DNA of 64,000 nucleotides, taken from Octopus sinensis. Its lineage: Eukaryota. The notes under the pieces were generated by a model, which worked only from the letters and a program-made list of their open reading frames with translations, had not been told where the DNA came from and made no database searches. Positions within the stretch are counted from its first letter, which is position 1; the number at the start of each line of letters is the position of its first letter. The stretch covers positions 434,001 to 498,000 of the forward strand of contig NW_021831989.1 in the NCBI RefSeq assembly GCF_006345805.1, in the 5' to 3' direction. The position numbers and the translations under genes were made by a program. This document shows positions 3,052 through 63,993 of this stretch, one piece after another.

Positions 3052-5214
3052 TGTGACCGGTTGAATACGAGCCCAGGTTGAATACGAGCCGTTAAAAAAA
3101 TCGTCAATATTTTTTTAATGAAAAAATTAATCAATTAATTAATTTATACCTTTATAATGATTTGTAATTTTAATAATTCTAAATTTTTCACAAATTTTTG
3201 TTTTCTTAACGGTTTACGTCAGATAGAATAGTAATAGATTTTTCCTCACGTTAGTTTTTTTTTGTTATGAGGGTTGTCCGTTTCAATCTGCTACAAAAGC
3301 AAGAAATTATAACCTATCTGAAATATCAAATTATACCATCCAATTTGCTAAAGGAGAAGCGAAATTTTATAAGAACTGCATCCTTATTCAGATTAATAGA
3401 CTCCTCGCCGGATCAATTATTTTTTTTCAAAACAAGTGGAATTCTTTTGCATGTGTTCGCTGTGGAAGAGGATGAACAGCAGAGGATATTTATTGAAAAT
3501 GTTCACCTCAAAAATGGACATCCTGGTCGTGATAGACTTCTTTCTCTTTTAAAGAATTTAGTCTATGGATCTTGCAGAGATGAAGTTATGCTTGTTCTCA
3601 GGTCTTGTCCACAATGTCTTGCAAGACGACTTATGAACACTCGACCAAGTATAACACCTATCAGAGCATATACAGTCAGAGAAAGATAGTAGTTATCTAC
3701 TCTAATATCAGATATATTTTTGATTTAGTTGATCTACGGCATTATTCAAATGCCAATGACAATTTTTGCTGGCTTTTGGTTGGGTTGGATTCTTTTTCTA
3801 AATTTTGTTGGACAAGACCTCTAAAGACTAAATCGGCCATGGAGGTGTCTTGTGCAATAAAAAGTATAATTCTGATGTTTGGAAAACCAACCATTTTGCA
3901 CACAGACAATGGCAAGGAATTCGTAAACGAAAAAATTTTCGATTTATGCTCAACATATCGTATAAAACACGTCAGAGGGCGTCCTAGGTGTCCATGGGTG
4001 CAGGGACAAGTAGAGCGTCTGAATCAGACATTGAAGTTCATGATTTCTTCTACGTGCTTTTCAAAGAATTTGAATTTCAGATGGATCGATATCATCGAAG
4101 AAATTACAAGTTCGTATAATTCTGTCCAGCATTCGACCACTTTGCACGCTCCATTCGAATTGATGTTTGGAGCTTCTGCCGATGACACCGTTAATAATCA
4201 CTACTCAGAAAACGAAATGAATGAAATATTCCACCAAATTGATTCGGGAATAAAGAAACACAAAGTGAAGCAACTGAATATCTTGCATGGTTTTGGTCAT
4301 CGAATGAAACCACGAGAACGAAAGCAATTTCGAATTCAGACCATGCTGAAAGAAAAATGTTAGGAAAAAGAACGTGGAAGAATGATATTTCCATTTTTAA
4401 CATCGGCGATCGAGTTGTCAGGAGGGTGTATCTTGACAATAATAAAAAAACACGGAAAAGTGCCTTAAATGAGCACATTGATACATTCACATATTATGTT
4501 AGAGGAGTATCTGCCACAGGAATTGTTGATCTCGAGGCAGAAGATGGTACTGTGATACAAGAAAATAGCAGAGACTTAGCGAGGCTAGAATAGCTTAATC
4601 GAAATTTAATTCAATAAAATTTATATTTTCAAAAATAAAAATGATGTAGGGAATAATTTGACTAGTTTAAAGCAAACTTGTACACTAGTTTATGTACTAA
4701 GATTTTCTTACAAATTAATTTAAATAAGATTATTTAAGTGATAACAGGAACAAAGATCTTGTTAAATTATTTCCGAATATGATCAAGAAAAGTTGTTCAG
4801 CAATTTTTTTCTGTTTAATCCAAATTCAATCAATTCTTTTGTCAGATGGCTCGGATCGCTGATCTGTGTACATGAAGGACACTCGCAAGACCCAATGGCT
4901 GTTTCAGCGTCTCTCATTGGGGGCTGCGTGGCCTCTTTCCTTCTCCTTTTTATACATACTTTCCGCCTATCAATGAAATGTATATTATCAAAAATTAAAA
5001 TGATGTAAATTATAATTTGCTAATATTGTGAATAATTTGACTAATTTAAAGCAAACTTGGTTTAGATATAAAACTTCATTTTTTAAAAGATTAAAGGTTC
5101 AATCATTAGTACGCGCCGTTTGCCATTTTGTCAATTGGCTTTTTTATCGGTATATTGACTATCGATATTTTTAACGGCTCGTATTCAACCGTATCTCATT
5201 TTCGACCGGTCACA
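3052..5214 (+). mobile_element. Ginger/TDD-like DNA transposon (family 1) with Gypsy-like integrase
   Basis: Imperfect TIRs TGTGACCGGT...GGTTGAATACGAGCCGTTAAAAA at 3052 and inverted ending at 5214. Coding 3267-4593: H2C2 domain (HLKNGHPGRD...CPQC) and rve DDE core (DLVD, HTDNGKEF, GQVERLN). One micro-intron and one frameshift. No clear TSD. Confidence 0.85.
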
Positions 5215-12500: not shown

Positions 12501-15205
12501 CATCGCTTATCAAGGACTTTTTTGCCGATAAACACAATCATTTGTCAATACTCCTCGGGGATCTAAATGCCAAATGCACATCTTTTGGCTGTCTGAGAAC
12601 CAACAGGGATGGCATCATTCTTAAGAGCTTTCAGAATCTCTCAGTTTCTCGGTCATCACATCAAAACCCCAAATCATTACTCACCAGGAGGGTGGGACTA
12701 TTTGGGCGTAGCATTGGTCTCTATGTCTACTCTTCAATTTATGGAACAACCGCCTACACCTTAAATGATATTGGAAGTGACCATCTACCAATTTTATACA
12801 AACTCAACCTTGGACCTTTAAAGGGTAAACCAACTTTTATACGATATAACCTCTCGACTATAAACTGGGAACACTACCGAAAATGTTTTACACTTTATCT
12901 GAGCAATTTCGCTCCTAAACTTGACGAAAATTCTTCATCTGAGGACCTCGAGAAGTCTAGCAATTCCCTTATTGGATACATAAAGTCTTATCTGGAAACA
13001 TATTCTACAAAAATCGTCTCAAACAATAGGAAAACTCACATGCCAAACATGAATGTTGAAATCCTACTAAGGAAAAAACAATGTCTAAGGAACAAACTCC
13101 GGCGCTGCGCAGATTTTCGTGACCGGTCCGTTTTGGAAAGTGAAATCTTCACCATTACGGAAGAAATAAGAAAATCGGCGAAGGTGGCGAAGGATAAAAA
13201 ATGGAATACTGAGTGCAAAAAGCTACATAAAGGAAGTCCAAATTTTTGGAAGGTCTACTCGAAATTAACCTCGACGTCTGAGAAAACTATACCTAAACTG
13301 CTAAAACAAGATGGATCCCCTGCATCTCATGAAGAAATCCCGAACATATTTGCTGATAGTCTCAAAAGAATACAAGAAGTCAATCCGGATACAAATCTAT
13401 CTGATTCAGCTTTGTTTGATATGGAAAAAGAGTTGGAAGACAATCTTAGCTCATTACCAATGTGCTCGGAATCTATAACGTGCAAAGACGTGGAAAATGC
13501 AGTTAGATACTCCAAAAATAACGCTCCGGGAAAGGACAAGATAACCATGCGCATGTTCAAAGAAGCTCCCAAGCAACTTTACGAATATTTGGATGTCTCT
13601 TCTCCCGCAGTGTGAGCTTGGGATACGTCCCTTCTTCATGGAAACTGACGGAGGTAAGGATGATACGGAAGCCTGGAAAACCTGGTTACTTGGCGACAAG
13701 TTATAGGCCTATAAGCCTAATTCCTACCATCAGTCGAATAATGGAAAGGGTAATGTTTGAACGACTCTCTGAACACGTCGAGAGAAATGGTTATCTCAAA
13801 GACGTGCAGTGGGGCTTTCGGAGGGGTCGTTCCTGTGCTGACTGTCTTTATACACTCAATTCGTCGATTGTAAAGGCTCTGGATTTCAAAGAGTGTCTGA
13901 CAATTGTGTCTCTAGACATCTCAAAAGCCTTTGATATGGTTTGGCACCTCGGTCTCCTTAGACATCTGGCGAAGTGTCACATAGACAAAGGACTATTCCT
14001 ATGGCTAAAAGACTTCCTCCGCGACAGGCGCTCTGTGATAAGCTTTCTGAACTATGACTCGGATGAACTGAAACTTAAAAGAGGCGTCCCTCAAGGATCA
14101 GTCCTCAGTCCTCTATTATTCAACATTGTGATGAGCAATCTGCCGTCTCCTGTCAACACACGGACGGAAATTTTGATATACGCCGATGATGTTGTAATCC
14201 TTGACATTTCATCGAAACCTGCCTTATCCGAACAAAGGATTATATCATATATGAATACAGTGGAGCAATGGTGCGATGAAAATATGTTCATTATTGCGCG
14301 TGAGAAGTCCGCATTACTGAGAATCACAGAAAGCAGAAATTTAATAAATTTACCGTGCCTGATCAAGAACATACCTCGACAAAACTCAATTAAATATCTT
14401 GGCTTGTTCATCGATGAAAAGGGAAACTATCTCGAAAACGCAAAATAAGTAAAAGGAAAGCAACTAATGCTCTGTTCTGCCTGAGGAAGTTAAATTTGGA
14501 GCCTGATACTTTCCTCTACGTTTTCAATACGGTGATCCTACCGGGACTACTATACGGAAAAGAGGGATGGTACTTCTCTAAAAAGAAGGACACCATCTTA
14601 ACTAAATTTGAAAAGTCTCGCAGGCTCGCTTTGAAGCTTGCTTACCACCAAAAAGTTGAAGATCCAATCCCCCTGTGGCTTGAAAGTAAATCCTCCATGG
14701 TCGGTGAAACTGTCGAAAAAGCTATAAGTGGTTATAAATCCAACTCAATTGTCACTGGGACGTACCTGCAGAGGTAGAAAAGAAAAAAAAAAAAAAAAAA
14801 ATTTACTTGAGGGGGTCTCTTTTTTTTTTCTGGGAAGAAGTCGATAGGGTAGTCCTATTGTTTCATTATACAAACTCCCCCCTAACCTTTAACCCTTCTC
14901 TGTTTCCAATAAAACTTCCTATTCCTATTCCTATAAAAAATTCGCATAGAGTAATCTTACATTTTTATGTTCGTTACTATGACGCTCAATCACCTGATTG
15001 ATGAAAATTTCTTTGTTTAATTTCCGCGTTCTTGTTAACTGAGTTACTTTTTTCAAATTTTAATAATTTAAAAAATTATTGAATTAACAAAAGTAATCAT
15101 TAAGAATTTCAGATCTTAAACAAAGAATTTAGATGATTTGGAGTGATAAATCCGATTTATCACTCCGGACACTTAGAACGGGCCTAGACATTATAACTTA
15201 CGACA
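9566..15205 (+). mobile_element. Ginger/TDD-like DNA transposon (family 3) with about 75-bp TIRs and 5-bp TSD
   Basis: TIR TGTCGTAAGTTATA...GGAGTGATAAATCGGATTTATCACTCCAAATCAT at both ends. TSD ATTAC at 9561-9565 and 15206-15210. The rve core FHSDNGKEFRN..GRPRHPQSQGQIERYN lies at about 9830-10190. Confidence 0.9.
10975..14934 (+). mobile_element. Near full-length Jockey/I-group LINE (gag-like ORF1 + APE-RT ORF2)
   Basis: ORF1 (to 12153) has three Cys/His knuckles (CFRCQQFGHIANFC etc.). ORF2 starts at a GTGA overlap (12150), with APE (VNARSL, GDLNAK, SDHLPI) and RT (GVPQGSVLSP, YADD) domains and several 1-2 nt frameshifts. 3' end is AATAAA+(TTCCTA)3. TSD AAAAAATTCGCAT at 10962-10974 and 14935-14947. 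Confidence 0.92.
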
Positions 15206-17489: not shown

Positions 17490-19729
17490 CAGGGTTCTCA
17501 AGTGCGGCCCTCGGGCCGCATGCGGCCCGAGAATCTTTTTTGCGGCCCCGACTTCCAAACTTTAAAATAAATTTTGGATATAAAATTAATTGTAAATTAA
17601 TATTATTAAAGATAATATTTTAACTACACGTGTTTGTAAATATATTTCAGGTTGAGTATTTTTTCATGCCATCAAAGAAATATCGAACATTATCTCAAGA
17701 AAATAGAGAATTTCAAATTGAATGGGAAGAAAAGTTTTTTTTCGTTGAACTGAATGGTAAAGCTGTTTGTTTGATATGCAACTGTGTCATTAATTCATTG
17801 AAAAATTATACTATTGAACGTCATTATAAGAAGCACTCCGAAATATACAATTTATCTCGGAGAGTCAAGGAAAAAAAAACTCAATATATTAAAGACGTCA
17901 TTTAAAAATCAGTCCTCAATATTTAAACCAGTGGAAAATAAGCATCAGTTATTAACGTCTTATAAAATTAGCCACCTTCTTGCTGTAAATATGAAACCTT
18001 ATTCTGACGGAGAAATTATTAAACTGCTATTTCCATTTTTTGTGATGAATGTTGTCCGTCAAATATACAAAATATTGCAAAACGATTACCATTAAGTAAT
18101 GATACTATTACAGAAGAATAGAATGTATTTTTGAGGACCTTGCCCGTCAGCTAATCAAGTTCTTTACTATTAAAAATAATTTTTATAGAACATCGAAAGA
18201 TTTTTTATATCATTCTTTTGCTGTCGACACGAGTAAAGATATCTCTGATACCGAACAAATGGTCGTATGCATTAGAGGTGTCACTTCGGATTTTAAAATT
18301 TCTGAAGAATTTTTTTCTCTTCGTTCATTAAAAGGCACTACAAAAGGAATGGATGTACTTAACGAATTCCTTGAAAGTATTAAAGAATTTGACATTGATC
18401 CTTCCAAAATAATTTCCATATGTACTGATGGGGGGGCGAATATGATTGGTCGTAATAAAGGGTTTCATGGACTTTATTCAGAATGGAGACTTGAAAAAAA
18501 TCTTGATCCTATATTTTGGCAACATTGTATCATTCATCAGGAGAATATAATCGCAAAGTCACTTAAAATGCAAAATGTAATAAGTACGGTGTTGTCCATT
18601 GTGAATTGGATACGCGGTAAATCTCTCAATCACAGGAGATTTAAAAAAATGTTAGTGGAAATTGACACAGTGCATAATGATGTGCTTTACCATACCACTG
18701 TTCGATGGTTGAGTCGTGCCGCGTGCCTCAAAAGGTATATTTGCTTGAATAGAAGTTAGATTTTATGAACTACTCCCTCAAATAAGAGAATTTGTTAAAG
18801 ACCACAAATACCATGATTTGTTGAGCAGTAAAGAGTGGATTGCCGATTTAGCTTTTTGGGTAGATCTAACCTCTCATTTATCGTCGTTAAATTGTGAATT
18901 ACAGGGGAAATATAAATTTTGCCATCAACTCTATGGATCTATTGCTTCTTTTATATCAAAATTAAAACTTTGGAGGGATCAAATAATGCTCAAAGATACA
19001 ATTCATTTTACTTGTTTGAGTGAAAATAAAGCTAACGGTTCATTTGAAAAATATACTACCATTATCAGTCACCTTATTGTTGAATTTGAAAAACGTTCTA
19101 AGGTTTATTAAAATTTAGTTTATTTTAAGAATTTTGATGAAATTTTGCCATCAATGAAAATTTTTGCAGCACCATTCAATATAGATCCTAAGAATGCTCC
19201 GCCATCACTCCAATTAGAATTGATAGACCTTCAATCAGATGTGCAATTTACCTCAGTGCAAAAGATTGAAAATTTAATGGAATTTTATAGTTCACTTCCC
19301 AAAGAAAAATATCCGAATATACTCATAAATGCTTATAAATATGCTTCAATGTTCGGATCCACTTATTTATGTGAGTCAATTTTCAGTAAAATGATTCACA
19401 TAAAAAATAAATATCGAAATAAATTGACTGATAATCACTTATGCCAGCTTTTGCGATCTACATGTGCCTCCTATATTCCGTGTTATGACAAATTAGTTAA
19501 CAATTAGTTAAAATAGCTAACAATTTTTCGTTTTAGTTAACAATTTTTCGTTTTAGTCATTTTCCTTTAATTAATTAAGACTAACTATCTCGGTTTCTGA
19601 ATAAAAAATGAATCTAAAAAAAAATTAGTTAAAAGTTAATGAAAGTTTTAATTTAATTTATTCTGCGGCCCCGAAGACAATGGTTAATTATCGATTTGGC
19701 CCCGACGTTAAAAAACTTGAGAAACCCTG
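17490..19729 (+). mobile_element. hAT transposon (Charlie/SPIN/GTF2IRD2-like) with intron-containing transposase
   Basis: TIRs CAGGGTT(T)CTCAAG and a perfect 8-bp TSD ACTTAGAT (17482-17489, 19730-19737). Subterminal GCGGCCC repeats. BED-like CLIC..RH, SFAVDTS, TDGGANM, HCIIHQE, VRWLSR, FGSTYLCESIFS motifs. Introns 18159-18188, 18735-18759, 19103-19129. Confidence 0.95.
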
Positions 19730-20031: not shown

Positions 20032-21477
20032 CTAAGACAATTTTTGAGCACGAGTAAACAATCTCCCGATTATATTCTCAGTCGAGTGTAACACCGAAAG
20101 GGCAGATTCGTACAACTTTTCGGTGGAAGAGTCGTCGTGGATAATCAATGAATTGTTATTCTGGTCGAGAATTCCTAGACATAGGCAATAAACGCACAAC
20201 CATTGATCATTCCATCCAACACCATTTGCGACAATTTTATTTCCACCACATGCTACAGCATGAAACACAAATAAACAACCATGGGCAAGTTTATGAGCTC
20301 GGAAATATGAGAAATCTGCACTGCCGAAAAAGGTTCGATTATTCGCAGGAGATTCTGCTCAAATAAGGTTTCCCTGAGGTCCCTCAAATGCATTATAATA
20401 TTTGGATCTTCGTTGTATTTCTCGTGGGACTGAATTATAAGCTACACGTTTTTTAAAACGAAAACATTATTGAAGTCAACTAAGGATCGTTTTTTGACGG
20501 CATCCCCAAATTGCATGATGAAGTTCAGCTCAGGACACCCATACTTCAGAGTGATTCGATCCGTCATTATTTTAGATATCTCCTCCGGCCTAAAATACTT
20601 CAAATTGTAAGAATACGCTAAAAGCATAATTTTGCACAAAATCATGTATTTGAGAGCCAAAACAGCCACAGGGCTTTCAATCTTGTGGAAATTCTCAAAA
20701 GCTTCATAAAAATACGAAAAGGCGAGTTTAAAGTCTTTTTCGTCCCCGGAATGAATAATCCCCGACTGGAACTCCAACTTGGCCTGCATCACAAGGGGAC
20801 AGTAAATTCCATTCGAAGTCGTCCTCGCCGACACCAAAGCAGCTCTGGACTTGACAATATTCCCCAGCTGGTAGTAAATACGACTTTCCTGCAAATGCAC
20901 ATAAACCAAAAGTTCCTTGTCGTCAATTTTTTTCAGTTCCCATAAAAGTTTAGAAACTAGAATATTGTGTGGACAAAAACCAATTTCCAGTGCATTTTGA
21001 TACTGTTTCCGTTCGTAATAAATTGTAATTAGACGGGACTGGGGAATTACTTAATAAGCTACCTCGAGAGACTGTCGGAGGTAAACGTGACCGTTCCCTT
21101 GAGCCCAGGCAACACAGTCCTTGCAGAGGTCGATTTGATCGTCCAAATTAGCATTGGAAGTGAGAAATGAATCAATGAGAGATTTAATTATCTTTGCTGC
21201 TTTGATTTTGCTCAATTCCTCAATAAATGGGTGGAGTTTCTTTATAAGAATTCCCAGTTCTAATCATTTTGTGTCATTGAAACAACCTTTGCCCAACTTG
21301 TTTTTTGATAGCAACTTCCAAGTTCAATCACGCTTGTTCTTTGTGAGAAATATCCTCGTATGGAGACGAAACTAATAAAAATCATTTAAATAACTTGTTA
21401 CCTATATCTGAGAGTGCCTGTATCTTTGTAGAGATTTGATACGAGACATTGAGATTTTGAGCCACAAGAGTTGCCAT
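20032..21477 (-). CDS. PSMD11: 26S proteasome regulatory subunit Rpn6 (about 8 micro-introns)
   Basis: [52 protein letters not shown] and the PCI C-terminus. Two apparent 1-nt frame breaks near the 5' end. Confidence 0.95.
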
Positions 21478-23165: not shown

Positions 23166-25116
23166 ATGTCAAGAAACTTAAGATTTGGTGATTCTTTCAA
23201 GTTTCGCCGAGACTTTAAAGATGAAAACAATATCAATTCCGAAAACACAACTACCTACTTAAAACAAACTGTAGAAATCTCAAATCCGCCCACGAGTCTA
23301 GCTTTTGGAACTCCTGAATTAGACATGTTTAAAGACTCTAGGATGAGAGAAAAATCCGAAATGACAAATTTGAATTCCCGCCTAGCTAATTACATAGAAA
23401 TTTCTCGAGAAAAGTCAAATCTAAATTTTGAATTGATGGACGAACTTGAATATGTCAAAAACCAAATCAGAAACGAAACTGGTGCTATTAAAGAATTGTA
23501 TGAAGCCGAGCTGGGACAACTCAGAAATGTTCTCGATGATATGGAACATGATAAAAACGAATTTATTTTGGTTGCTGATAACAATCAAAGAATGTGTGAC
23601 GATTTAGAAGAAAGGTTCAATAAAAAACATTTTTGATTTTTTTAGAATTAACAATTTTAAAAATTCAGAAGAGAATAACATTTTAAAAATAAAAGAATTG
23701 GACAACCAACTGTCAAATTTGGATTTTAAAATAAATAATTTATCTTCAAAAAATGACTTTTTGAAAGATGAAAAAAACAGAGATTCTGAGATTATAAAGA
23801 ACTTGAGATTAGATCTTGAAATCGCTCAAAATGTGTGGGAATTATTAATTTTGCAGGAATTAAACGAAGAGACGATTTTACGATCAGACAGCCAAAACAG
23901 ATGTCAATCAATTGCGGAAGAAATACAGTTTAATACAGATATTCACGAACGGGTTTTAATTAGTCGAAATATAAAAAAGGAATTGAAAGATTTGCTTGCT
24001 ATGGCTAACTACGATCCACTAAATCAGTCAAAGGAGTGGTTGAATTGTGAATTTTCGTCATGCATTAAGGAAATTCAAGAAGAATACAACAATAGGCTGG
24101 ATGAAGTCAAATCTGAAATGGAATCTCAATACAATACGAAAGTAAATAAAGAGATGCTGACTTACAGATCTGTGAAATAGAGACTTATTCTATGCAGAAT
24201 AGTCAATTGACAAGTTCATCAGATCAACTTGAAACTTTAAAGACATCTAATTCTGTTTTAGAAAACGAAACATCGGAAACTATAGAAAGGGTATAATAAT
24301 TTCCCGAATTGAAGAATTCGATGCTAATTTCACAAAATGAAAAGCTTAGAAATGAGATTAAACTTTTGAAAGATCAATATGATTACTTGTCGATGCAAAA
24401 AATGAATGAAATAGACGAAATCAGAAAGCACCAGGCAGCTGCTCTTGCGGAACTTAGAACAATTATTGATGATAATTTATCTCTACAAATGGAAATTGTG
24501 TCATATCAAAAGTTGCTTGAATACGAGGAGGCTAGGTAAATTCGAATTAACAAATTAAATTTAGAGTTGGGATTTCCGATTTGAGTAATGAAAATGTTTC
24601 CAAGTCCAATAAAGTTGTAGAACCAGGTTGTCGATTAATTAAATTTATTAAAGTTGTTCAAGAGATTAGACCCAAACCAAAGTTGGAAAGAAAATATAGT
24701 TACAAAAGAAGTTCGAAAGGATCTATCGCTATTTCGGATACCGTATCCGATGGATCGTGTGTAACGATTATTAACATGGATAAAAATTTTGTAACAAAAA
24801 CAAATATTGTCTAATTATATCGATTTAGGCCCAAAATCTAGAAGATTGGAGGATTGTGCAAAAAGTTGATGGAGCAGAAATAAACGAGTTCATTTTTGGA
24901 CGGTATTATCTTGGACCTGGAGATATTGTAAATATTTGGGCAAAGGGATTCGGTACAAGAAACTCAAACGATTTGGAATGGCAAAATGAAACCTGTCTTG
25001 GAATTGGAGATCAAGTTGTCACAATTCTGTTCAATTCAAGGGGAAAAGTTGCATTTTAATAATTAATTTTGCAGGAAAAATCGACATACACACAGAAAGC
25101 TTTATATAAAGTCTAA
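23166..25116 (+). CDS. Cytoplasmic intermediate filament protein, protostome type with lamin-tail domain (about 9 introns of 24-38 nt)
   Basis: Coil 1A REKSEMTNLNSRLANYIE, coil 2 end LQMEIVSYQKLLEYEEAR, LTD (SYKRSSKGSIAIS...W...VVTILFNSRGKEKSTYTQK). No CaaX at the C-terminus, so not a lamin. Confidence 0.9.
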
Positions 25117-31742: not shown

Positions 31743-32415
31743 ATGTGGGTATGTTTCATATTATTCTCCCATTTTTTATCGAAGGGACCACTAATCACAC
31801 ACGAGGTTATTTAAACATGACAATTGTAGGTTGAATTCACAATTTCGATCGGAGATAAAATTGAGGGGACGATTAAAATCGGACTTTATGGAAAAACTGT
31901 TCCCAAAACTGTGGAAAATTTTGTTCAAATTGCCAACTCAACAGTAAAATTAATTAATAATTCTTTCAGAATCCCGGCTTGTCGTACAATTCCTCGACAT
32001 TTCATCGTGTCATATCCGGTTTCATGATCCAAGGGGGAGATTTCACCCGCGGAGACGGGACGGGAGGTTTCTGGAGGGTGTCATATCTAGGCATGTCAAT
32101 CTACGGACAGAAATTCAAGGACGAAAATTTCAAATTGAGTCACAACTCGGCCGGTGTCCTGTCTATGGCAAACAGTGGCCCCGACACTAACGGCTCACAG
32201 TTTTTCATAACACTTGCTGCCACCAACTGGCTGGACGGGAAACACGTTGTTTTCGGGAAAGTGATTGATGGGATGGTTGTCACTGTCAGTCTGAGTTATA
32301 GGATCTTGTTATCAGAATTGGCAATATTAAGACTGACCATCGAGATGCCCCCAACAAAATGGTTCGGATTGTCGCCTCTTCCGCGAGTGTTTTGGAGACA
32401 CCTTATGCGTCTTAA
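31743..32415 (+). CDS. PPIB: Cyclophilin B-like PPIase with signal peptide (4 introns: 24, 26, 24, 26 nt)
   Basis: [16 protein letters not shown].., [65 protein letters not shown]. The spliced CDS is 573 nt. Confidence 0.93.
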
Positions 32416-32709
32416 TTACCCTTGGACTTTGGTTTTTTTGTTTAAGGCTTAAATTTGTTTTATATTTAGTTGGTTTATATCGTAATTTAAACGTACTAAA
32501 TCCAAACTATTAGACAAATCATATTAAAAACTCTCTTCTTTAATTAAACTCTTCCGAATTTTATTCTACTTTTCGTGACCCAGTAAAATTGAAGACGTCA
32601 GGAGTGATGGAAAGGTTTAATGACCTGGCTTAAATATCATCTCTTAATAACAACAGAAACATTAAATAATTTAAAAATTCCTAAAGAAATGAACCAATAT
32701 TAGTACGGA

Positions 32710-42400: not shown

Positions 42401-44775
42401 TGTCCGATCGGGGAATGGAAGAGATAATTGAAATACATTTGGAAACACTTTGCTGCATTTCTTTTGAAGGATTGTGTAGTTCTTGTTGGAAGGTGTCGTT
42501 GACCATCTATTTGTATAGATTCGGAATTTGTCGTCACTTTTGTTTGGATCAGTTTCTTTTCGTTTGCTTGGCAATAAACGGGTGAATGAAAATGTCGTGT
42601 CCACGTCTATACCTCTTTTTCATGTCCTAGGATTACTCATTCCGTGTTTTTCGAACGTTATTGCATGCTTACGGATTTTATCATTTCCAAAATTGAAGAT
42701 CTGTCAACATGTTTTGACGATTTCAATCGAAATTCGTGTTTGTTTGCCATGATTTTGCTACTGAGTCGTCTCAAACCTTCTTCTGAACAGTCAACAGACA
42801 GTGTTTCATCAAGAATAAGTCATTTGTCACTTCTCGCTCAAAAGTTGTTTTTGCTGATGTTTTTAGACTGTCTTCTTGTCCTGTGTACCGAATACGAATA
42901 TTTACTGCCGAATTGTGTGTAAATATGCTCAGTGAACAAAATATAATCGCCAATTTGAGCTCTCTTCTAATCCAGTTGTTGTCCATGGAATCCGCTGATT
43001 GCAACTTTGCTCATGGAAAGCTGCTACAAGTATGAAGCTGATGTGTGTATTATTTAGGTACTACTTTTATTTAAAAAAATAAAAACTATGAAAATTAGCG
43101 ACGAGTCTGTTTTTGAAATGAATAATATTTTTAAACTTGTTGTGTATAAACTAAAGGAAACGTTGTTCCTGATTTGTTAAACTCTAGATTGTTTACTTCT
43201 GGGGGAAAATATGTTCCGTTGGACTTGATTTCCGCGAGTGTTATTAATTCCCCTATGGATCACAACGATCCTTTTGTAATTGACTTTTTTGTTGATTCTA
43301 TTCGCAACATTGATAAAGAAATTGTCAGTCACTTTCACGGGACTGTGTATTTATCTGCAATTTTGCGACGGGCTATTAAGCTTGTCGTTAAATGTACTTT
43401 ATTCGGAGAGCCTCTGTTGTCTTTGTTGTGTTCTCACGATGTTGCTATGAAAGTGATGTCATTCTGTGAGCCTGAGCACATCGTTTTATTGCTCAATCAC
43501 TCTTCCGTTAACTTGGCAAGCATAGTCTGCTTCCTAATAAACGAAAATGCAAAACAAGACAAATTCGTTGATCACATCAATCATCAACTTGTCACTAATG
43601 TTGGTATAGTTTTCTGATTTAAGGCAATGCTTGCTTTGAGTACAGTTGGTCATAAACTTTCTGATCTTTCTGTGGATTTTATTCACAGGGTTTGGTGTGT
43701 TTTATTTTTCTAGACTCTTAATTCGGTAGTCTTTATTTTAAAAAACGCACCAAGGTTTGTTTTACATAATGGAGTTTAGTGACTGCCTGCGGGTCGCTCC
43801 TCTAACACTTTTGCCTTTCTTGTTTCCTCGTCTTGTTGAGAATGATGTTCCATTTTAAATTGATAATTAAACTAGGAAATTCCATTTGACCTGAATATGT
43901 TTTTTGAGGACATATCTTCTGTGTTTGTTGGTTTTGTCGACAGTGAGCTTTTTCATTTAAGAAAATGTGCTGCTTCGTTTTTGCAGAATTTATTTGTAGT
44001 GAACGTCGTAAAAATTCTGAGTTCTTTAAATGGTGAATTATTGTCTTCAATTTTAGTCAATCACCTTTCACTCGTATTTAATTCCGTTATTAAATTATTA
44101 CAAGATGACGATGGGGAAATTCGTTTTTTGATGACTAATTTTGTAGCTTGGGTAGCTTGTTTGTATAACTTTGAAACAATTCCTCATACGAATGTATATG
44201 GCAGTTTACAGAAGTTTGTTCCTATCTTTTGCAGCTTGATTCGTACGTCTGATGTAGTTTTTATTATTTTGAACTGTCTCTCTACGATTGATTTCTCTTG
44301 TCTGACTTCGGCTTTCTCCGAGTCTCTGTTTGAAAGTGAATTAAAAAACATTTTTCAAGACAACGTGTCCCTTGTAAAAATTCTTTCCATTTTTCTGGAT
44401 GAAAATGTTGATAAAATGTTGATGAGTTGCCAATTTGATGCGAAAGAACTTGGTCAGTTCAATGACATGTTTGTCAAGTCAATTAATTGTTTGATGGATT
44501 GTCTTCACACTTTGACTAACGAAAATGAGCTTGGTAATTGGAATCAGCGTCACATCACTTTTTCCATGTGCCACTCCGCCTCTTATTTACTTACACTTCT
44601 ATTAAAGGTGGTAAGGTTTGATCTCATGACCGACAACCTTTTGCTCACATTTCGACAATTTAATCTTTTTGTTCTTGAAATGAATACAAAATTAGTTGAA
44701 GAAAATACTTTCAAACGGATCTTATTCGTAAATGAGTATTTATCTATTAAAATTGACAGTCTTTTGAATAAATAA
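39446..44775 (+). CDS. THADA: THADA/Trm732 tRNA 2'-O-methylation regulator (many micro-introns)
   Basis: SSWKSIKEV, CPHHGLFEF (cf. RHRGAFE), VRNCGGICF (cf. RRSAGIPF), IRNLSSLLFGSVSFRLLGNKR (cf. VRNSSTLLFSALITRIFGVKR), FFERY, LLLSRLKPS. Confidence 0.85.
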
Positions 44776-47864: not shown

Positions 47865-49042
47865 TCAAACCCTTTCATTTCCATAGTTCACATGCTCGGT
47901 AGATTCGCCGAGGGCACAGTCCTTGTCCGAGACAGAATCATATTTTCTAGTTTTCGTAGACATTGTCAAGTCAAAAAGACAATAGCGAATATCCCTCGTC
48001 TTAAACTTCATAACCCTCCCCCAGATATCCTTTATAATCGGGGACACCCCGTTAATTTGTGTAAACACGGCCGAGGCGATAAGAGACCGAGGAAACTTGC
48101 ACGCGTTGGAGTGACAGAGAAAAGTGCGGAGAAGCTGCAAATAAGAGCTTAAAAGTACAGTTGCCCCTCTGTTGAGGTCATAGCGAGAATAACGAGGCAT
48201 GTCTATTTCTTCAAAACCCGCCACATGCAGTTGGAGGAACATTTTGAGCCAATAGTAGCCAGTCGGCACAAATAAATTCCATTTCAGACTACGGAGAATT
48301 CGTAACTCCATGCTGACCAATTCTTGTGGAGAAAACGTTTTTCTTGCCATTTTGGCATAACTTTGGGAGTCACAGACGACAGTCCCCTCAGGGATCACAG
48401 GGCCAACCAACCTCATATTTGGCCGAAATAAACAAGCAGGAAATGGCAACCAACTCAAGATGGGGATACTTTAGACTCCTGGACCCATCCGAGCACAGAT
48501 AACGGTCTAACAAGTCGAGAGCCAAAAAAAAGACATCCCACTCCAGTCGATGATTCAAACAAATCTACAAAACAATCCTTGGAAGTACCTCAGAAAGCAT
48601 TTCTATCATATCTGCCCTCATTAAGTCAGTGATGTGAGGAGATGAACGATTGACTAGCAATTCGGGAGAGCATAGCCTCCTTTCTTGTTCAAGTCCAATC
48701 AATATCAGTTTATTGGTCAGTACAGACGCCTCGATTGGGTCTTTCTCAGGGCATTTCCACTTGTCGGGTGGCTGTTTGGGCATTTCCATCTCCGAAGAGA
48801 GGGGTCTGTTTTCTTTATTGTGGAGATTGTGTGTTATTCTGAGGGACCCGGCTATGGCAGTCTTTTTGTGGGTTGCGGACATCTGAGCACACACTTTGTC
48901 GATCTGAATCCAACCGCGAATCTAGAAAGAACTAAATTGACGGAAATTGACCGAAGAGGACTTGGAATTCACATTTACAGGTTTTAGTGAAGGAAATCTA
49001 AGCAACAAGTCAATACAGGTGGTCGAACCCATTAAAGTCCAT
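47865..49042 (-). CDS. CCNE: Cyclin E-like cyclin
   Basis: MRADMIEMLSE..FFLALDLLDRYL..LELVAISCLFISAKYE..MELRILRSLKWNL..WLKMFLQ..KFPRSLIASAV. The start at 49042 needs a 19-nt first intron; a downstream ATG is the alternative. Confidence 0.75.
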
Positions 49043-54581: not shown

Positions 54582-56712
54582 ATGGTTCTATCTATTTCTA
54601 AAAAATCACTTCCTTGCAATTCGTGCAAGCTAAGCAACCAGAGGAAAAACGGTTGCACGTGCTCCTCTTGCGAGTGTTTCTTTCATCTCTCTTGTGTCAA
54701 AATTTCCAAGTTGGCAGCCTCCACCTTATCGAGGTGAATCTGCCCCTCATGCCATCCCCTTGCCCCTTCCTCGCCTCCGGCATTTTCTACTGCTGTGCCT
54801 ATTTCCAATCTCTCCCATCCAATCATTCCCATTATATCTGTAAAAGATTTCCTCTTGTCGGTTGCCCGAGCTAAAAGAGTCCGCTCCATCCCAGTCAAAA
54901 TTCCTAAGGTTGCTCGGATTCTCGCGGCCGACACATTATCTTCCGTTATTAACAATGCACTTACTTCCAACGACCCATCAAGTTGGAACCATCTTTTCTG
55001 TTTCGGAATCATGGCCTTAGGCCTCCCTAAAGAGGCTACCCCCAAGCAGCCCAAGGGCTATAAAATTCATTCCATTTCTAATTCCTCCCGATTTAAAGCC
55101 AATATCTCCGCCTATATGTCATGCCCCTCGGATTTCTCCAGTTGGTTAGGTGTCTCCCCAAGTTCTTGCAGAACTAAAAACGAAGCACCCCAATCCTCCG
55201 GATGACCAACGGCCCTTTATCGTCCATTCTGACCTTCCAAACTCTCATGTTTCTAAAGAGGAAGTTCTTGATGCCATTAATTCTCTGGCGACCGGTAGTT
55301 GTGGCGGCATAGACGGTCTCCGCCCTGGGCACGTCAAAGATATGCTATCAAATCATACCTGTGAGGCTGGTCAGCGCCTTCTATCTTCTCTAACGGCTCT
55401 TACGAACAGAATCCTGAATGCCGAAATTCCTGAACACGCCCGCGACCTATTTTTCGCTGCCAATCTCACTGCACTCCGGAAGAAAGAAGGCGGCATTCGC
55501 CCCATCAACATCAGTTATGATGTTCACCGTTTCTCTGTTGCCCATTGTTCTATCGAGTCATTACTTCCTAACATCCATGTCACTTCGCCCGGAAATCTCA
55601 AGATTCTGGGTTCCCCGATTTTTCACTCCGGTGTTGTTTCTACCTTATCAGAAAAAACATCAAACCTTGCGTCAATGTCCTGTAATCTTGGTATCATCGA
55701 TTCCCATTCGGCCCTGTTCTTATTGAGGAACTGTTTCGCCATTCCTAAACTACTGTTTACCCTCAGAAGCGCACCATGCTTTGCCAATCCCGAGAGTCTT
55801 TCCAGATTCGACCATGCCCTTAGGACTTGCCTCGAATCAATATGTAATGCACCATTCGACGATCTTGGCTGGGAACAGGCAATACTCCCTATCAGTCATG
55901 GCAGCATCGGTGTGCGCTCAGCCACTGACCTTTCTTTGCCAGCATTCCTTTCCTCCACACATGCCACGAGCACCCTTGTCCAAGAGATTCTCCAACCCTT
56001 TTCCGAATCCTCTTTGGACACAGAGTCAGTCGCCGCAAAAAGCCGCTGGCTTGGGTTGTCTCTTGAGCTTCTTCAGAATCCGCACGCACAGGTCGAATGG
56101 GACAGGATCCTCTGCGACCAGAAGTTAAACAACCTCAAGCCTAAGCTTAACCAACATCGCTTGGCTTGCTTGTTGGCTGCCTCACAACCATATTCGGAGG
56201 CTTGGTTGACCGCTATCCCAATGGGTTCTATTGGAACCTTATTGGACGATGATTGCCTGCGGATCGGCATATCACTGCGCCTAGGTCTGAACGTATGCCG
56301 GGAACACCGGTGTCGCTGTGGATCGACCGTTGACCCCTTTGGATTGCACCCGTTATCGTGCCAAAGAAGTCCCGGACGCTTCCCTCGACATACGGCTCTG
56401 AACGACATAGTCAAGCGGACTCTAAAACTGCCGGATTCCCTTCACAGCTGGAACCGGTCGGGCTGGCTCGGGAGGATGGTAAACGTCCTGATGGTCTAAC
56501 GACCTTCCCATTTGAAAATGGCAAGTCTCTCATCTGGGACGCCACTTGCACGGATACCTTCTCCGCCGGGAACATCTTGACGTCGGCTTCAGAGCCAGGC
56601 TCCGCAGCCAACCTGGCCGAAACGCTAAAAATCAAGAAATACAGTGCATTATCTCACCGCCATATCTTTGCCCATCGGGAGTCCTCGGCCCCAGAACTAA
56701 AAATTTCTCGAT
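54582..56712 (+). mobile_element. CRE-like (RLE) LINE with N-terminal PHD finger; RT core deleted and 3' end truncated
   Basis: CNSC..CTCSSC..FHLSC..[TGA]ICPSC; GGIDGLRPGH, KKEGGIRPI, LGSPI, AIPKLLFTLR, CRCG..HPLSC, RH..LND, DGKRPDG, WDATCTDT. Confidence 0.9.
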
Positions 56713-56750
56713 GTTACAAAGAATCTTCCTTTCCACGTTTCGAAAGAATG

Positions 56751-58792
56751 TCACCATAAATCCAAAGCTGTATAGTAAATGACAAAAATTTCATACGAAA
56801 AAAAATCAAAAAAATTTTTATTTTGAATAATATTTAAAAGCGATGGAATTAATGCTATTTTCTCAAGTTTATTAGGATCCAACCGCATCAGCGCCGCCAA
56901 CAAAAAATCAAAATATAAGGTCAGTCCGCCACTAATACCACGTTGTTTGCCTATATCTTCCTTATGCTCACAATAAAAACCAAAGTCCCGCAATGCTCCC
57001 CAGCCAATTTCTACCCCGTTCATAGAAATAATAAAATGATGTCCCCTGATCTAGAATATACAACGAAACTGACTTTATTTGTAAAATATTCAAATTGGTC
57101 ATTTAAATATTTCGATTCTTTATCATGTCTCGGGACGACGATTGTACTCGTGTGGCTGACTGGGGCGAGATTATTTCCGGACTAAAAACTTAGTAAAACT
57201 AAAACCCCCATTTTATAAAATGGAATATTATAGGAGATTACAAAATTCTAAACGTTTTTAAATCAGAAAACTTGAGTTTTTCCATCGTCATATTTTCGAT
57301 TTCCACTAAAGTCGTTCTCCAATATCCTTCGAACCACCAACCGTCGGGCATAGCCAATGACCGTCTTCTATTGAGAATTATCTGATTGACAAAACAGCAA
57401 AAAGTTCAGATTTTCCCGACGCAGTTATGCAAATATCCCCGTTCTGGAGATTAAGTAGCGCAATCAAAGCTTGTTTAGTTTCAGAACAATAATCGGTGAC
57501 GTCTTCTCCAATTAGTTCGTTTTCTTCAAATAGTCCATCGGACTTTTGGCAAAAGAAACACAAAATCTGGATTGTTGTGAGAAAATACCATATTAAAATA
57601 TTTCTGACCAGTTTTTTCTCTGATCGAGTTAATATCAGCGATCGTCAAATTCTAACAAAATAGAACTCTCTTGACTACATATTGCCTGGGGATTTTGATT
57701 GCAAACGTGCATGAACTCTCTGCTTTCGGGAAAAATTTGTGGATAATCTCAGGAATGTGAGACACATTGACCAACTAGAACTAGAGGAAACGGCATACTT
57801 TCATGTCATCGAGACGCAAGTCCGGCTTATAATCCCCGTAGACTTCAAAAACATCTTCATATTTCAAAACATTCAATTTTGTTTTTCCTGGAGAGGCAAA
57901 AGTCTCACTCATTGATTTTGCGAGTTCAATAACGTCTGAAAGGGAGTTCGTTTTAATCTCCATCTCGAAGCAGGTGTCCTCTGTCGGCGTCCCCGTTGGA
58001 TTCTGTCTGAAGGATCGGACTACCTGAAAGTATTTTTCAGCCGTAATATATGGTTTAAACTAGTCACATTATGAGACAGAAATCAGACCGAAAAGCTATC
58101 GTTCGGAAGCACAAACAATTTGTTTTCGCGGCTTGTCTTTACCTCCATTTCTATCTTTAATAATAATTTAGAAATAGTACGTCATTCGACGACTGGACAG
58201 GCAAATAAGGAGTTTCGATCTCAATAAATTCTACAAAAGAATGAGCAATTTTATTCAACCATTTTTGTATAGAAAAGTCCTAATTTTGTGCATCAATTCA
58301 GATCTCCTTTTCAAGTATTTCTGAACCTCAATTTCCCTTATTTTTTTAATAAATGTATACGAATCACACTAAAAGAATACAAATTGGGGAATAAACCAAA
58401 TGCTCATCCAAAACCAAATGTTTGCAGACTTTCACATGTGTCTTGCCACCCTTCTTAGACTTGTAAACGATTCCGTGTACAACTGCCGTTGATAGTGGGG
58501 ATATCTGAAATTAGCTAATCAGACTAACCGAATGTACCTCCTTCCTTTTATAGCGGAGCAAGACAGAGCCATAAAAGTCAGACATTCGAGCTTCAGGGTA
58601 ACGACCATACTTGATGGAAGAGATCCATCCGCAGAGTACTACGGTTTTTCCCGAGTATTCAGACCCAACCTCTTCGCAGGTGTGGGTACGATAGGAATAC
58701 GATGAATTCGACCTTGATTTGTCCGTGATAATTTGAGATTGAAAGGCAGTGGGTATTAATTTATACCGACGCCGCACCACGAAAGACAGCAT
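56751..58792 (-). CDS. DARS2: Mitochondrial aspartyl-tRNA synthetase-like protein with degenerate catalytic motifs
   Basis: Transit-like N-terminus, YRTHTCEEV..VVLCGWI (OB fold), motif 1 RTFLYKNEFIEIETPYL, YFQVVRSFR, YGDYKPDLR, GAD-like region, MNGVEIGWGALR, GGLTLYFDFL. One exon junction near 58.35 kb is ambiguous. Confidence 0.75.
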
Positions 58793-58895: not shown

Positions 58896-59662
58896 TTAGT
58901 TAGTTACCCCGGCTTCTCTAGCATGTAGGAAGCCGGCTGCAATCAGGTAGCGGACAGCGGCGATCGGGCGCTCCCAGAGATCCCGAATCCCAATAGGTGG
59001 CGACTGGTGAGGCGGTCCAGGACAGGAAAAAATGTCTTCAGGGGCGAGGGTGCGGAGTGTTTCGAAAAAGAGTGGATGATGTCCCGAGCGAAGTCGTGCA
59101 AGCTGGACACGGAAGTATCTGTCGAGTGATTGCTCTGAAGGATGGACTGGTGGCGGAGGAGAATCAAGGAGTTTGTTATTTTTATGCATCCTGATAGCAC
59201 GAGTTGAGATGTAATCGTGAATTAATTTCTTCCCAGTTTTCCCATTGTTCGTTAAGAGTATTTTTGAGAGAGGTCTGCATTGATCGGCTAGAGTAGTGAT
59301 AATATGTCTTTTGTTTTCTGAGATAGAGATTTTGTGGCATGGATGAGATATTTCTTGTATTTCGTAGAGGAATTGAAGTCCTCTCATCTCCAAATGGTCT
59401 TTGAACGGAAGGATACAAGATTCCCAATGAAGATGATCGATGGGAGTGGCAGCCAGTTATTGTGCTGAGGCCTGAGTTTTGGATTCTTTGTAGTTCTTGG
59501 AGATTTGATAGAGAAAGGTTCCATGACCAAGCCGGACTACCATAGTTCATTGATGATCTGACAAATTGTCTGTAGACCAGAGCGAGGCATTCCTTGGCTT
59601 GGCCATAAGATTGTCATGATAAGGCACATAATGCGTTCAGCTTGAGTTTGACTTTGGTGGAA
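58896..59662 (-). mobile_element. 5'-truncated I/Jockey-group LINE with 16-bp TSD
   Basis: MNYGSPAW..LQRIQN..ITGCH, LARLRSGH and a (TAAC)n tail. TSD ATGGTCTACAAATTAG at 58880-58895 and 59663-59678. Confidence 0.9.
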
Positions 59663-62699: not shown

Positions 62700-63993
62700 T
62701 CCAATTATATCTATCGTTAAAATTTTTATATCTTCTAACATCATATGATCCGCATCTTTTATTTGGACTTTTTGCCGTTAAATAATAATTCGAATCGGAT
62801 ACCTAAGTATCATTTTTGATATTTTCCAGTGGCATTTTTGGTAAATAGCAAATGCCACAGTCTTCATCTCCATTTCATTTCCATACAGATAATCAATTTG
62901 TGTTTTTGGTTATTCTCGTCCTTTGGATAAAGACTATGAATTGAAAGTTAAAAATACCGATCATTAATTATCATAAATTGATTTGCTTTTTTATAAGTTT
63001 GTATTTTTCGGTTTTAGATTTAGTTTGTACGGGTTTTTGAGTAGAACATTTACAAGATTTTGGTGTTCATTGTCATTTTTCACGTAACATAAGGATTGAG
63101 ACCAGTGTTCCCTCTAAGCGAGTGGTAGCTACGCGCGCTGGGCACATTGCATTGTGCAGCGTTATAAAGTGACGTGTGCAAAAAATTTTTGGGGGGGAAA
63201 ATTTTACAATTAAAAAACCAATGGTTAAAAAAATAGGTCTAGTCAATTGGATATTCTCTTCTGTTTTTATTTTGTATCCAAAATTTGTATACTCGATCAA
63301 GATCACTGTATTCCCACTTGTTAAGAACTTGATTCGCATGATCATCTCCAAATGGTCAATCTCAAGTCTATTACGTAGTTTAGTTTTGATACAGTTCAGC
63401 AAACTAAATCCACGTTCAGCATCAGCACTCGACGCTTGAAATGTGCCACAAATATCCACAAATGTTGCAGTGGCTGAAAATTTTTTCTCCGCTAGTATAT
63501 AGTAAATTACATCTTCAAATGTTTTCAAAGCACCAGAGTGCAGTTTTTCTTTTAAAATAAATAAATTTTTGAATCTGGTGTTAAGGTTTCGACGTACTCT
63601 ATCAACCATTCCGGCTTAAAAGAAGGAGAATTTTTCTTAAGTCTCATATCAATATTATAGACACGTTTTCGTTTTGAAATGAAAATAAGAATATATAAAT
63701 TCATATAAAAAATTAAAAAAAATAGCAATTTTTAATATTATACTTTCTACTGCGCAGAAAAAAATTTCGCTGCGCAGCAAGGTGCAAACTGCTGCGCGGC
63801 CGCGCACGCGCGCAGCTTAGAGGGAACACTGATTGAGACTATCCTGATACATCTTTGAGAAGATACCATCTTTTAATTAAAATGACACTAAACCCTCTTT
63901 AAATAAATTATTTTCGTTATTAATTGAATGTCGAACTATGTAGGTCACGCTGTCAACAATGAAGGTCGCTCTGGTCGCCAGCGTGGGGATACA
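62700..63993 (-). mobile_element. Ginger-like family 2 5' fragment, interrupted by a hAT
   Basis: 62820-62995 aligns with 8820-9005, and 63845-63990 aligns with 9005-9135 plus 15245-15271. Terminus TGTATCCCCACGCTGGCGACC at 63993. Confidence 0.75.
63103..63831 (-). mobile_element. Non-autonomous hAT element (729 bp) retaining the dimerisation domain
   Basis: TIR CAGTGTTCCCTCTAAGC at both ends and a perfect TSD ATTGAGAC (63095-63102, 63832-63839). SSADAERGFSLLNCIKTKLRNRL motif. Confidence 0.93.

Follow-up and report, generated by a model that had tools for sequence, protein, structure and literature searches.

A putative dicyemid gene derived from mitochondrial aspartyl-tRNA synthetase appears to have kept its reading frame and lost most of its canonical active site

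Here, we describe an aspartyl-tRNA synthetase (AspRS)-like gene found within a 64-kb stretch of DNA ('the window') that is filed as Octopus sinensis (GCA_006345805.1, contig VCDQ01006019.1, 670,265 bp; record position = window position + 434,000). The gene lies on the minus strand, running from an ATG at 58792 to a TGA at 56753-56751, and the span given in the original prediction, 56751-58792, is exactly this coding sequence; its product, of 551 amino acids (aa), descends, on the evidence of profile and structure searches, from the animal mitochondrial, bacterial-type, GAD-containing AspRS (DARS2). On balance, we favour the view that this is an intact nuclear gene, in which the scaffold has been kept and the catalytic residues replaced, of a dicyemid mesozoan parasitic in the kidney of Octopus sinensis, and that selection maintains it in a non-catalytic role.

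Results

Descent from animal mitochondrial AspRS

The Pfam family tRNA-synt_2 (PF00152) matches the product with E=2.5e-15 over profile positions 8-185 of 308, i.e. the first 60% of the profile, and the best solved structure is that of human mitochondrial AspRS (DARS2; 4AH6, E=5e-16), with the Thermus and E. coli enzymes behind it. Matches from a word-indexed search of 5.8 billion proteins were all to bacterial-type AspRS (21-27% identity), whilst HMMER, run exhaustively against 1.84 billion representatives, returned 547 matches (best E=7e-17), the best of those with names coming from Laodelphax, Spodoptera, Sycon, Ostrea and Halictus and being in each case an animal mitochondrial AspRS; identity to animal mitochondrial AspRS is ~25%. 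The Pfam, 4AH6 and HMMER matches together uphold the identification as mitochondrial AspRS-like with which the original prediction began. An AspRS profile built from 70 of the matches hits the exon open reading frames (ORFs) in colinear order; the exact products of ORFs 43897-44775, 23166-23636, 58511-58792 and 56751-57023 are not on record.

An AlphaFold2 model, built from a 61-sequence alignment, has a mean predicted local distance difference test score (pLDDT) of 67.7, and Foldseek places bacterial-type AspRS and human mitochondrial AspRS at the top of its matches to it (probability 1.0). Structure prediction had been proposed as a check, and it vouches for part of the protein only: the OB barrel (pLDDT >80, aa 31-120), the N-terminal half of the core and the GAD insertion (aa 280-400) are modelled confidently, but the model is poor at aa 167-194, 407-442 and 476-551, with pLDDT <50 over aa 476-551, the motif 3 region. 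The OB-fold start (RTHTCEEV..LCGW), motif 1 (EFIEIETPYL) and a GAD-like region are present, as had been claimed. Within the OB fold the RTHTC..LCGW residues are kept and the aligned contact residues replaced, with Pfam PF01336 undetected; the GAD insertion, of ~115 aa, is colinear and follows the YGDYKPDLR hinge, with Pfam PF02938 itself undetected. The N-terminal 34 residues are Arg/Ser-rich (6 K/R, 1 D/E, 9 S/T), and look like a mitochondrial-type presequence.

Loss of the canonical active site

The product was compared, motif by motif, with the consensus of 15 AspRS (11 animal or holozoan and 4 bacterial); for residue numbers and roles (R217, K198, F229, Q231, D233, D475, E482, R489, R537) we assume those of E. 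coli AspRS.

Motif 1: consensus ..F.EIETP.L; reads EFIEIETPYL; kept.
Flipping loop: consensus TPGGAREFxVP; reads SSNDIEMEVKT; lost.
QSPQ block: consensus LPQSPQQFKQ; reads LPNDSFSFKP; K198-aligned Lys kept, QSPQ lost.
Motif 2: consensus FRDE..RQPEFTQxDxE; reads FRQNPT--GTPTEDTCFEMEI; R217 kept, F229 to D, Q231 to C, D233 to E.
Hinge: consensus YGxDKPDLR; reads YGDYKPDLR; kept.
HHPFT: consensus HHPFTxP; reads THTSTIVVP; a vestige only.
GGGSIR block: consensus (H/A)YDLVLNGxEIGGGSIR; reads HFIISMNGVEIGWGALR (57038-56988); D475 to I, E482 and R489 kept.
Stretch before motif 3: consensus ~35 aa; here ~19 aa; ~18 aa missing.
Motif 3: consensus HGGIALGLDRL; reads SGGLTLYFDFL (56933-56901); R537 to F.
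After motif 3: consensus AFPK; reads LIPS; lost.

The block made up of the hinge and motif 1 keeps 8 of its 9 near-invariant residues. Motif 2, whose remnant FRQNPTGTPTEDTCFEMEI lies at 58011-57955 on the minus strand, keeps 6/21, and only its Arg and two Glu survive; motif 3 keeps 3/18, and the Arg nearest to it lies 7 residues downstream. Within the GGGSIR block YD reads FI and GGGS reads GWGA, and the residues aligned with K198, E482 and R489 are the only ones of the aspartate/Mg2+ site to survive. Taken over the whole protein, 45 of 112 near-invariant columns are retained in the 15-sequence alignment, and 55 of the 132 columns of >=90% conservation in the 70-sequence profile. The canonical motifs are, by comparison, present in each of the 20 top-scoring relatives that were read, other fast-evolving animal DARS2 among them.

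The motif readings from which the original prediction had argued (motif 2, HFIIS, GWGALR, the loss of HHPFT, and YFDFL) are all in the sequence, aligned to the canonical motifs of the 15 AspRS. Its verdict of a catalytically dead protein holds in part: as judged from these alignments, the canonical active site appears largely ablated, and the losses extend more widely than had been noticed (flipping loop, QSPQ, D475 and the ~18-aa deletion), but R217, K198, E482 and R489 are kept. The further suggestion of a repurposed tRNA-binding protein finds no specific support, the OB-fold positions aligned with F35, Q46 and E93, which we take to be the canonical anticodon-contact residues in E. coli, having been replaced too.

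Coding constraint set against catalytic constraint

Neutral decay was simulated on the coding sequence of oyster DARS2, which was mutated under an AT-biased spectrum to the point at which 40% of the 112 near-invariant residues were retained (200 runs); this takes ~0.45 substitutions per site. Genes that had decayed to this point carried a mean of 24 in-frame stops (range 12-34), against 0 in the 551 codons of the actual gene, and the chance that all 44 splice-site bases (22 dinucleotides) would survive such divergence is ~1e-8. More generally, no pseudogene lesions (stops, frameshifts or broken splice sites) were found in the 12-exon model, the introns of which are for the most part borne out by oyster DARS2. 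The proposal that the gene is decaying thus sits badly with an ORF, 22 splice dinucleotides and ancestral intron positions that are all intact.

The losses are, moreover, unevenly distributed: near-invariant residues are kept at 19/74 positions in the active-site blocks (flipping loop to QSPQ, motif 2, HHPFT, GGGSIR and motif 3) versus 27/39 in the scaffold (OB fold, hinge and motif 1, KPDLR, and GAD; Fisher p=1.5e-5). A cyclophilin ORF in the same window still gives a strong Pfam family match (E=1.2e-32), so that rapid evolution of the lineage would not alone account for the AspRS losses. This pattern argues that coding constraint has outlasted catalytic constraint, and the gene does not resemble a pseudogene that has been decaying for long; it might still have died very recently, or carry a lesion or two at the two exon-10 junctions.

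Gene model

A reading of both strands gives 12 exons and 11 introns, uninterrupted by stops. All 11 introns are GT..AG, with lengths, in order, of 33, 28, 29, 26, 29, 24, 27, 46, 23, 98 and 23 nt, and every one of them either has an in-frame stop or a length that is not divisible by three. The original prediction had most exons splicing in frame; the joining is indeed in frame, but 'most' understates it, since all 12 join via these introns.

58538..58792, minus strand: exon 1, aa 1-85; ATG at 58792, 34-aa N-terminal extension and OB-fold start (RTHTCEEV..VVLCGW); aa 30-76 align with the N-terminus of human DARS2 4AH6 (phmmer).
58397..58504, minus strand: exon 2, aa 86-121; remainder of a shortened OB fold; preceding intron 33 nt, 58505-58537, phase 0.
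58260..58368, minus strand: exon 3, aa 122-157 + 1 nt; hinge helix (…KYLKRRSELMHKIRTFLYKN), matching AspRS profile positions 133-160; preceding intron 28 nt, 58369-58396.
58181..58230, minus strand: exon 4, aa 158-174; motif 1 EFIEIETPYL; preceding intron 29 nt, 58231-58259, phase 1.
58089..58154, minus strand: exon 5, aa 175-196; degenerate flipping loop and QSPQ; preceding intron 26 nt, 58155-58180.
57799..58059, minus strand: exon 6, aa 197-283; FKP, motif 2 remnant and YGDYKPDLR hinge; the strongest AspRS-profile match (E=7e-10, profile positions 211-295); preceding intron 29 nt, 58060-58088.
57679..57774, minus strand: exon 7, aa 284-315; start of the GAD-like insertion; preceding intron 24 nt, 57775-57798, with two in-frame stops.
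57589..57651, minus strand: exon 8, aa 316-336; GAD-like domain (NLTIADINSIREKTGQKYFNM); preceding intron 27 nt, 57652-57678.
57391..57542, minus strand: exon 9, aa 337-386 + 2 nt; GAD-like domain; preceding intron 46 nt, 57543-57588.
57254..57367, minus strand: exon 10, aa 387-424 + 2 nt; equivalent of the FLWVVDFPLF strand, reading WWFEGYWRTTLVEI; preceding intron 23 nt, 57368-57390, phase 2.
57074..57155, minus strand: exon 11, aa 425-452; HHPFT vestige THTSTIVVP; preceding intron 98 nt, 57156-57253.
56751..57050, minus strand: exon 12, aa 453-551 + TGA; HFIISMNGVEIGWGALR, ~18-aa deletion and motif 3 remnant; preceding intron 23 nt, 57051-57073.

Confidence in the predicted model is lowest around exon 10 (aa 387-452). 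Two alternative introns would leave the motifs untouched: one of 22 nt before exon 9, which shares its donor with the 46-nt intron, such that the choice of acceptor is a candidate one, and one of 87 nt before exon 11, which in place of the 98-nt intron would add FRIF. Two others were rejected, namely a 28-nt phase-0 intron at 57368-57395 (...ELFA/KTVIGYARRLVV...), with which the F-x-x-x-W spacing of the FLWV strand is lost and the frame runs into a stop, and a 29-nt intron close to the 3' end, with which translation would continue into retroelement sequence in antisense orientation. Neither hidden exons nor a second AspRS came to light when the gene region and the entire window were scanned with the profile in all six frames.

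Intron positions compared with oyster DARS2

As a reference we used the DARS2 gene of Ostrea edulis, the 18 exons of which were mapped exactly, and compared introns by alignment column and phase. Five of the 11 introns match in both, after aa 157 (phase 1) and after aa 196, 283, 315 and 452 (phase 0), corresponding to oyster introns 5, 7, 9, 10 and 15; the chance of >=5 (at least five) such exact coincidences is 7.5e-8. The intron after aa 174 lies one alignment column away from oyster intron 6 and has an identical phase, and three further introns, in poorly aligned regions, have the same phase as the nearest oyster intron (including the phase-0 introns before exons 2 and 9). Each of the 11 has a counterpart in oyster, the order being unchanged (introns 2, 4, 5, 6, 7, 9, 10, 11, 13, 14 and 15). 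The matching set takes in introns of 23, 24 and 27 nt; as the shortest introns are thus among those shared with oyster, they would appear to be ancient introns that have shrunk to a minimum.

Origin of the DNA

The window has a guanine + cytosine (GC) content of 25-44% (~35% overall), is dense in retroelements (rve integrase, zf-CCHC gag, endonuclease of the long interspersed nuclear element (LINE) type, and RVT_1) with hAT as well, and its genes carry introns of 23-33 nt. Among animals, introns of <30 nt are known only from myxobolid cnidarians and Dicyema (PMC13644364), with a median intron of 27 bp in Dicyema sp. (PMC6543705); Dicyema japonicum, which was collected from O. sinensis, inhabits the renal sac of that octopus, and has a genome of 36.7% GC with a mean intron of 38 bp and 49% repeats, rich in LINEs (PMC6736024).

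The proteins of the window were also informative. The exons of an intermediate-filament gene at 23166-24539 (plus strand) are 100% identical to the NCBI entry '60 kDa neurofilament protein-like [Octopus sinensis]', which maps to this same contig and sits alone in its 90% cluster with no cephalopod relative detected. A search with an Rpn6/PSMD11-like ORF returned fragments only, at <=65% identity, with neither a cephalopod nor a named dicyemid among them; this is consistent with contamination, and is not decisive. The tiny introns, the GC content of ~35%, the many LINEs and the proteins that lack cephalopod orthologues together make it highly likely, in our view, that this contig is contaminant DNA from a dicyemid, in which case the neurofilament-like protein, if no other, would be mislabelled in NCBI as 'Octopus sinensis'. 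We found no report in the literature of a dicyemid aminoacyl-tRNA synthetase (aaRS) or of this contamination.

Neighbouring features

Other features of the window are as follows.

3605-4363, plus strand: retroviral-type integrase core (rve, E=8e-15).
10945-14448, plus strand: apparently intact non-long-terminal-repeat (non-LTR) retrotransposon, with a gag-like ORF with a CCHC zinc knuckle (402 aa), an endonuclease ORF (Exo_endo_phos_2, 380 aa) and a reverse transcriptase ORF (RVT_1, E=3e-40, 278 aa).
18259-18759, plus strand: possible hAT transposase fragment, presumed by eye only.
20442-20909, minus strand: proteasome Rpn6/PSMD11-like exon, <=65% identity to any database entry.
23166-24539, plus strand: the filament gene; the NCBI model has a 31-nt intron followed by a 173-nt 'intron' (24142-24314), far above the local norm.
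31979-32452, plus strand: cyclophilin (Pro_isomerase, E=1.2e-32), the ORF reading through a tiny intron.
47865-48458, minus strand: weak cyclin-like ORF.
56358-56759, plus strand: ORF overlapping the last 9 nt of the AspRS-like gene on the opposite strand.
63073-63609, minus strand: possible hAT transposase fragment (weak Pfam match, Dimer_Tnp_hAT, E=0.006).

The long open frames of the element at 10945-14448 suggest a young, possibly active LINE. The filament-gene ORF runs beyond the annotated donor to 24180, and the NCBI model may skip real exons that lie between tiny introns. The cyclophilin, Rpn6-like and cyclin-like genes serve as internal controls, which, by their predicted products, indicate that other genes here are still well conserved. 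Pfam gave no match in the flanking ORFs 55150-56499 and 58896-59393; we take the flanks at 55150-56759 (plus strand) and 58896-59393 (minus strand) to be retroelement remnants, from what we recognise as LINE C-terminal motifs (e.g. ..ARLRSGHHP..). Given the overlap with ORF 56358-56759, the 3' end of the AspRS-like gene would abut a repeat insertion.

Discussion

A model for the retention of the gene

Synthetase scaffolds can outlive their chemistry, and we suggest that this has probably happened here. The protein would still be made and imported into mitochondria, but would no longer carry out canonical aspartyl-adenylate formation, a probable loss because the residues that stack on ATP and those that contact the gamma-phosphate, Mg2+ and the aspartate amino group have all been replaced. 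Retention would then reflect selection for a role that depends on the scaffold, most plausibly as a dimer partner or as an RNA-/protein-binding factor of mitochondrial translation. The conservation of motif 1, the dimer-interface helix, suggests that dimerisation may persist, either of the protein with itself or with a catalytic partner, as for SLIMP with SerRS2-alpha.

As for why catalytic constraint should have lapsed, we speculate that this followed a change in the supply of Asp-tRNA to dicyemid mitochondria; one route would be loss of the mitochondrial trnD gene and use of cytosolic tRNA-Asp/AspRS in its place, although a link between the degeneration of AspRS and the loss of trnD is conjecture. 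Dicyemid mitochondrial genes sit on minicircles. The published Dicyema mitochondrial tRNAs are H, I, K, L1, N, P, Q, R, S2, Y and V, with trnD and about ten others absent (PMC6543705; bioRxiv 10.1101/282285). The lack of trnD would fit the idea, in the original prediction, of a change in the charging of mitochondrial tRNA-Asp. There is also precedent in non-bilaterian animals, where mitochondrial aaRS have been lost in parallel with mitochondrial tRNAs and mitochondrial AspRS in some cases outlasts its tRNA (PMC4558845). The fuller scenario, that dicyemids keep a selected, DARS2-derived pseudo-synthetase which arose through loss of the minicircle tRNA-Asp, with supply from imported cytosolic components, is one that we put forward tentatively, as a possibility rather than an expectation. 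Other dicyemid mitochondrial aaRS may also be degenerate or lost, if the gaps in the tRNA set are real.

Several observations weigh against a non-catalytic dicyemid protein held by selection. The residues aligned with R217, K198, E235, H449, E482 and R489 are retained, and the protein may have some residual or altered chemistry. Attribution to a dicyemid is strong but indirect, no named Dicyema sequence having been matched, and neither the search of 5.8 billion proteins nor that of 1.84 billion representatives found a dicyemid orthologue, the closest matches lying at ~25-35% identity. The absence of trnD may reflect incomplete sampling, with ~11 tRNAs found so far. Finally, the two introns that flank exon 10 (57368-57390 and 57156-57253, near oyster introns 13 and 14) are the only ones out of phase with oyster, 2 versus 1, and could hide a frameshift.

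Alternative explanations

It could be that the gene is a unitary pseudogene, recently dead or dying after Asp-tRNA charging was taken over by another enzyme, with lesions that are not yet obvious or with one or two concealed in the two introns that are not conserved. The gene is hemmed in by the retroelement remnants at 55150-56759 (plus strand) and 58896-59393 (minus strand), has no protein in the NCBI annotation, has two introns out of phase with their oyster counterparts, and shows degradation both of anticodon-contact positions and of catalytic residues; loss of mitochondrial aaRS paralleling that of mitochondrial tRNAs is, in addition, documented in animals (PMC4558845). However, ~0.45 neutral substitutions per site predict 12-34 stops and eroded splice sites, where we see 0 stops in 551 codons and 22 intact dinucleotides; the loss of residues is non-uniform, with the active-site blocks hit most (p=1.5e-5); and 9 of the 11 introns agree with oyster in position or phase, their order being conserved. 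We therefore consider gene death unlikely, if worth keeping in mind. A mistaken reading of the locus is far less probable still, and we give it very little weight, whether as a wrong gene model, as assembly errors in a low-coverage contaminant contig, or as an unrecognised set of exons that restores the motifs. It is true that the junctions of exons 9-11 are predicted only, that the assembly is a draft, and that Gnomon evidently copes poorly with tiny introns, the model for the neighbouring filament gene having a 173-nt 'intron'. Yet the six-frame profile scan of the whole window gave no other segment that matches the missing motifs; the degenerate motifs sit in long unbroken exons (87 codons in exon 6, 99 in exon 12); and sequencing errors give rise to indels, not to dozens of coordinated amino-acid replacements.

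A different possibility is that the protein is a still-working dicyemid mitochondrial AspRS, extremely derived, with an active site rebuilt around R217, K198, D233 (now Glu), E482 and R489, that has co-evolved with aberrant, fast-evolving mitochondrial tRNAs. Maintenance of the ORF, presequence and splice sites would be expected of such an enzyme, key residues do remain (including the motif 2 Arg and the Arg that binds the Asp side chain), dicyemids stand out for the divergence of their sequences and mitochondrial tRNAs (PMC6543705), and animal mitochondrial aaRS are under relaxed constraint (PMC4558845). Set against this, the motif 3 Arg, the adenine-stacking Phe, D475, the HHPF histidine pair and the whole of the flipping loop have been replaced, with ~18 residues deleted before motif 3. 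Some 6 of the ~17 residues known as catalytic or substrate-binding are kept (~35%), near the overall 40%, such that they show no sign of special protection. The canonical motifs are held by 20/20 of the top relatives read, fast-evolving animal DARS2 included, and the conserved cyclophilin ORF (E=1.2e-32) speaks against lineage-wide rapid evolution as the sole cause. A rebuilt, working enzyme is thus distinctly unlikely in our judgement, and it is a selected, non-catalytic protein that we continue to prefer.

Implications

Catalytically dead synthetases that are retained are rare, and the known case in animal mitochondria, SLIMP, exemplifies the reuse of translation enzymes; a DARS2-derived example, if true, would be a second and independent case. 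The source lineage combines minicircle mitochondrial DNA, an incomplete known set of tRNAs and extreme genome reduction, and dicyemids would, on the same proviso, represent the co-loss of mitochondrial tRNAs and mitochondrial aaRS in a bilaterian, caught midway and turned to a new function, as well as a direct route to study how mitochondrial tRNA charging is rewired in bilaterians. Separately, a 670-kb contig annotated as Octopus sinensis is apparently parasite DNA, which matters to users of the assembly or of its RefSeq proteins.

Comparison with known systems

Animal DARS2 (4AH6; Ostrea edulis XP_048742645.1) is the best match in both sequence and fold, and has the same order of presequence, OB fold, class II core and GAD; motif 1 and the YGxDKPDLR hinge are kept, and 5-6 intron positions and phases are held in common with oyster. 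By contrast, the protein described here shares only ~25% identity and ~40% of near-invariant residues with it, its OB fold and C-terminus are shortened, the flipping loop, QSPQ, most of motif 2, HHPFT, D475, GGGS and the motif 3 Arg are lost or degenerate, and ~18 aa are missing before motif 3. Judged by motif 2, motif 3 and the aspartate site, it would not be a functional AspRS, and appears to group with the synthetase-derived pseudoenzymes (SLIMP, HisZ). As far as we could find, an AspRS-derived mitochondrial pseudoenzyme has no earlier description, and among animals the present protein would be the first 'dead' synthetase to have come from AspRS.

SLIMP, which dimerises with SerRS2-alpha (PMC10570016), offers the closest parallel in kind, as a mitochondrial class II synthetase derivative that has been kept despite ablation of its active-site pocket; in short, a 'dead' synthetase with a job. 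It differs in being a duplicate that is paired with a catalytic paralogue and that has kept its tRNA-binding domain, whereas the anticodon-contact positions of the predicted dicyemid protein have been replaced, and the profile scan found no second AspRS-like locus within the window. Class II scaffolds have also been reused outside tRNA charging in HisZ (HisRS-like), the accessory subunit of DNA polymerase gamma (class IIa-like), AsnA (an asparagine synthetase with an AspRS core) and EpmA/PoxA (LysRS-like). These are ancient, widespread families with conserved signatures of their own, unlike what would here be a lineage-specific, degenerate orthologue or paralogue of DARS2; AsnA and EpmA, moreover, keep the ATP-binding arginines of motifs 2 and 3 and are still enzymes, whereas the motif 3 Arg of the dicyemid protein is a Phe.

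The likely evolutionary setting is that described for the loss of mitochondrial aaRS after loss of tRNAs, in which retention of an aaRS depends on its mitochondrially encoded tRNA substrate (Pett and Lavrov 2015, PMC4558845). That mitochondrial AspRS is sometimes retained without mitochondrial tRNA-Asp hints at extra functions (PMC4558845). The mitochondrial AspRS retained by those sponges keeps its conserved domains, however, whereas the dicyemid gene has been retained with its catalytic motifs gone.

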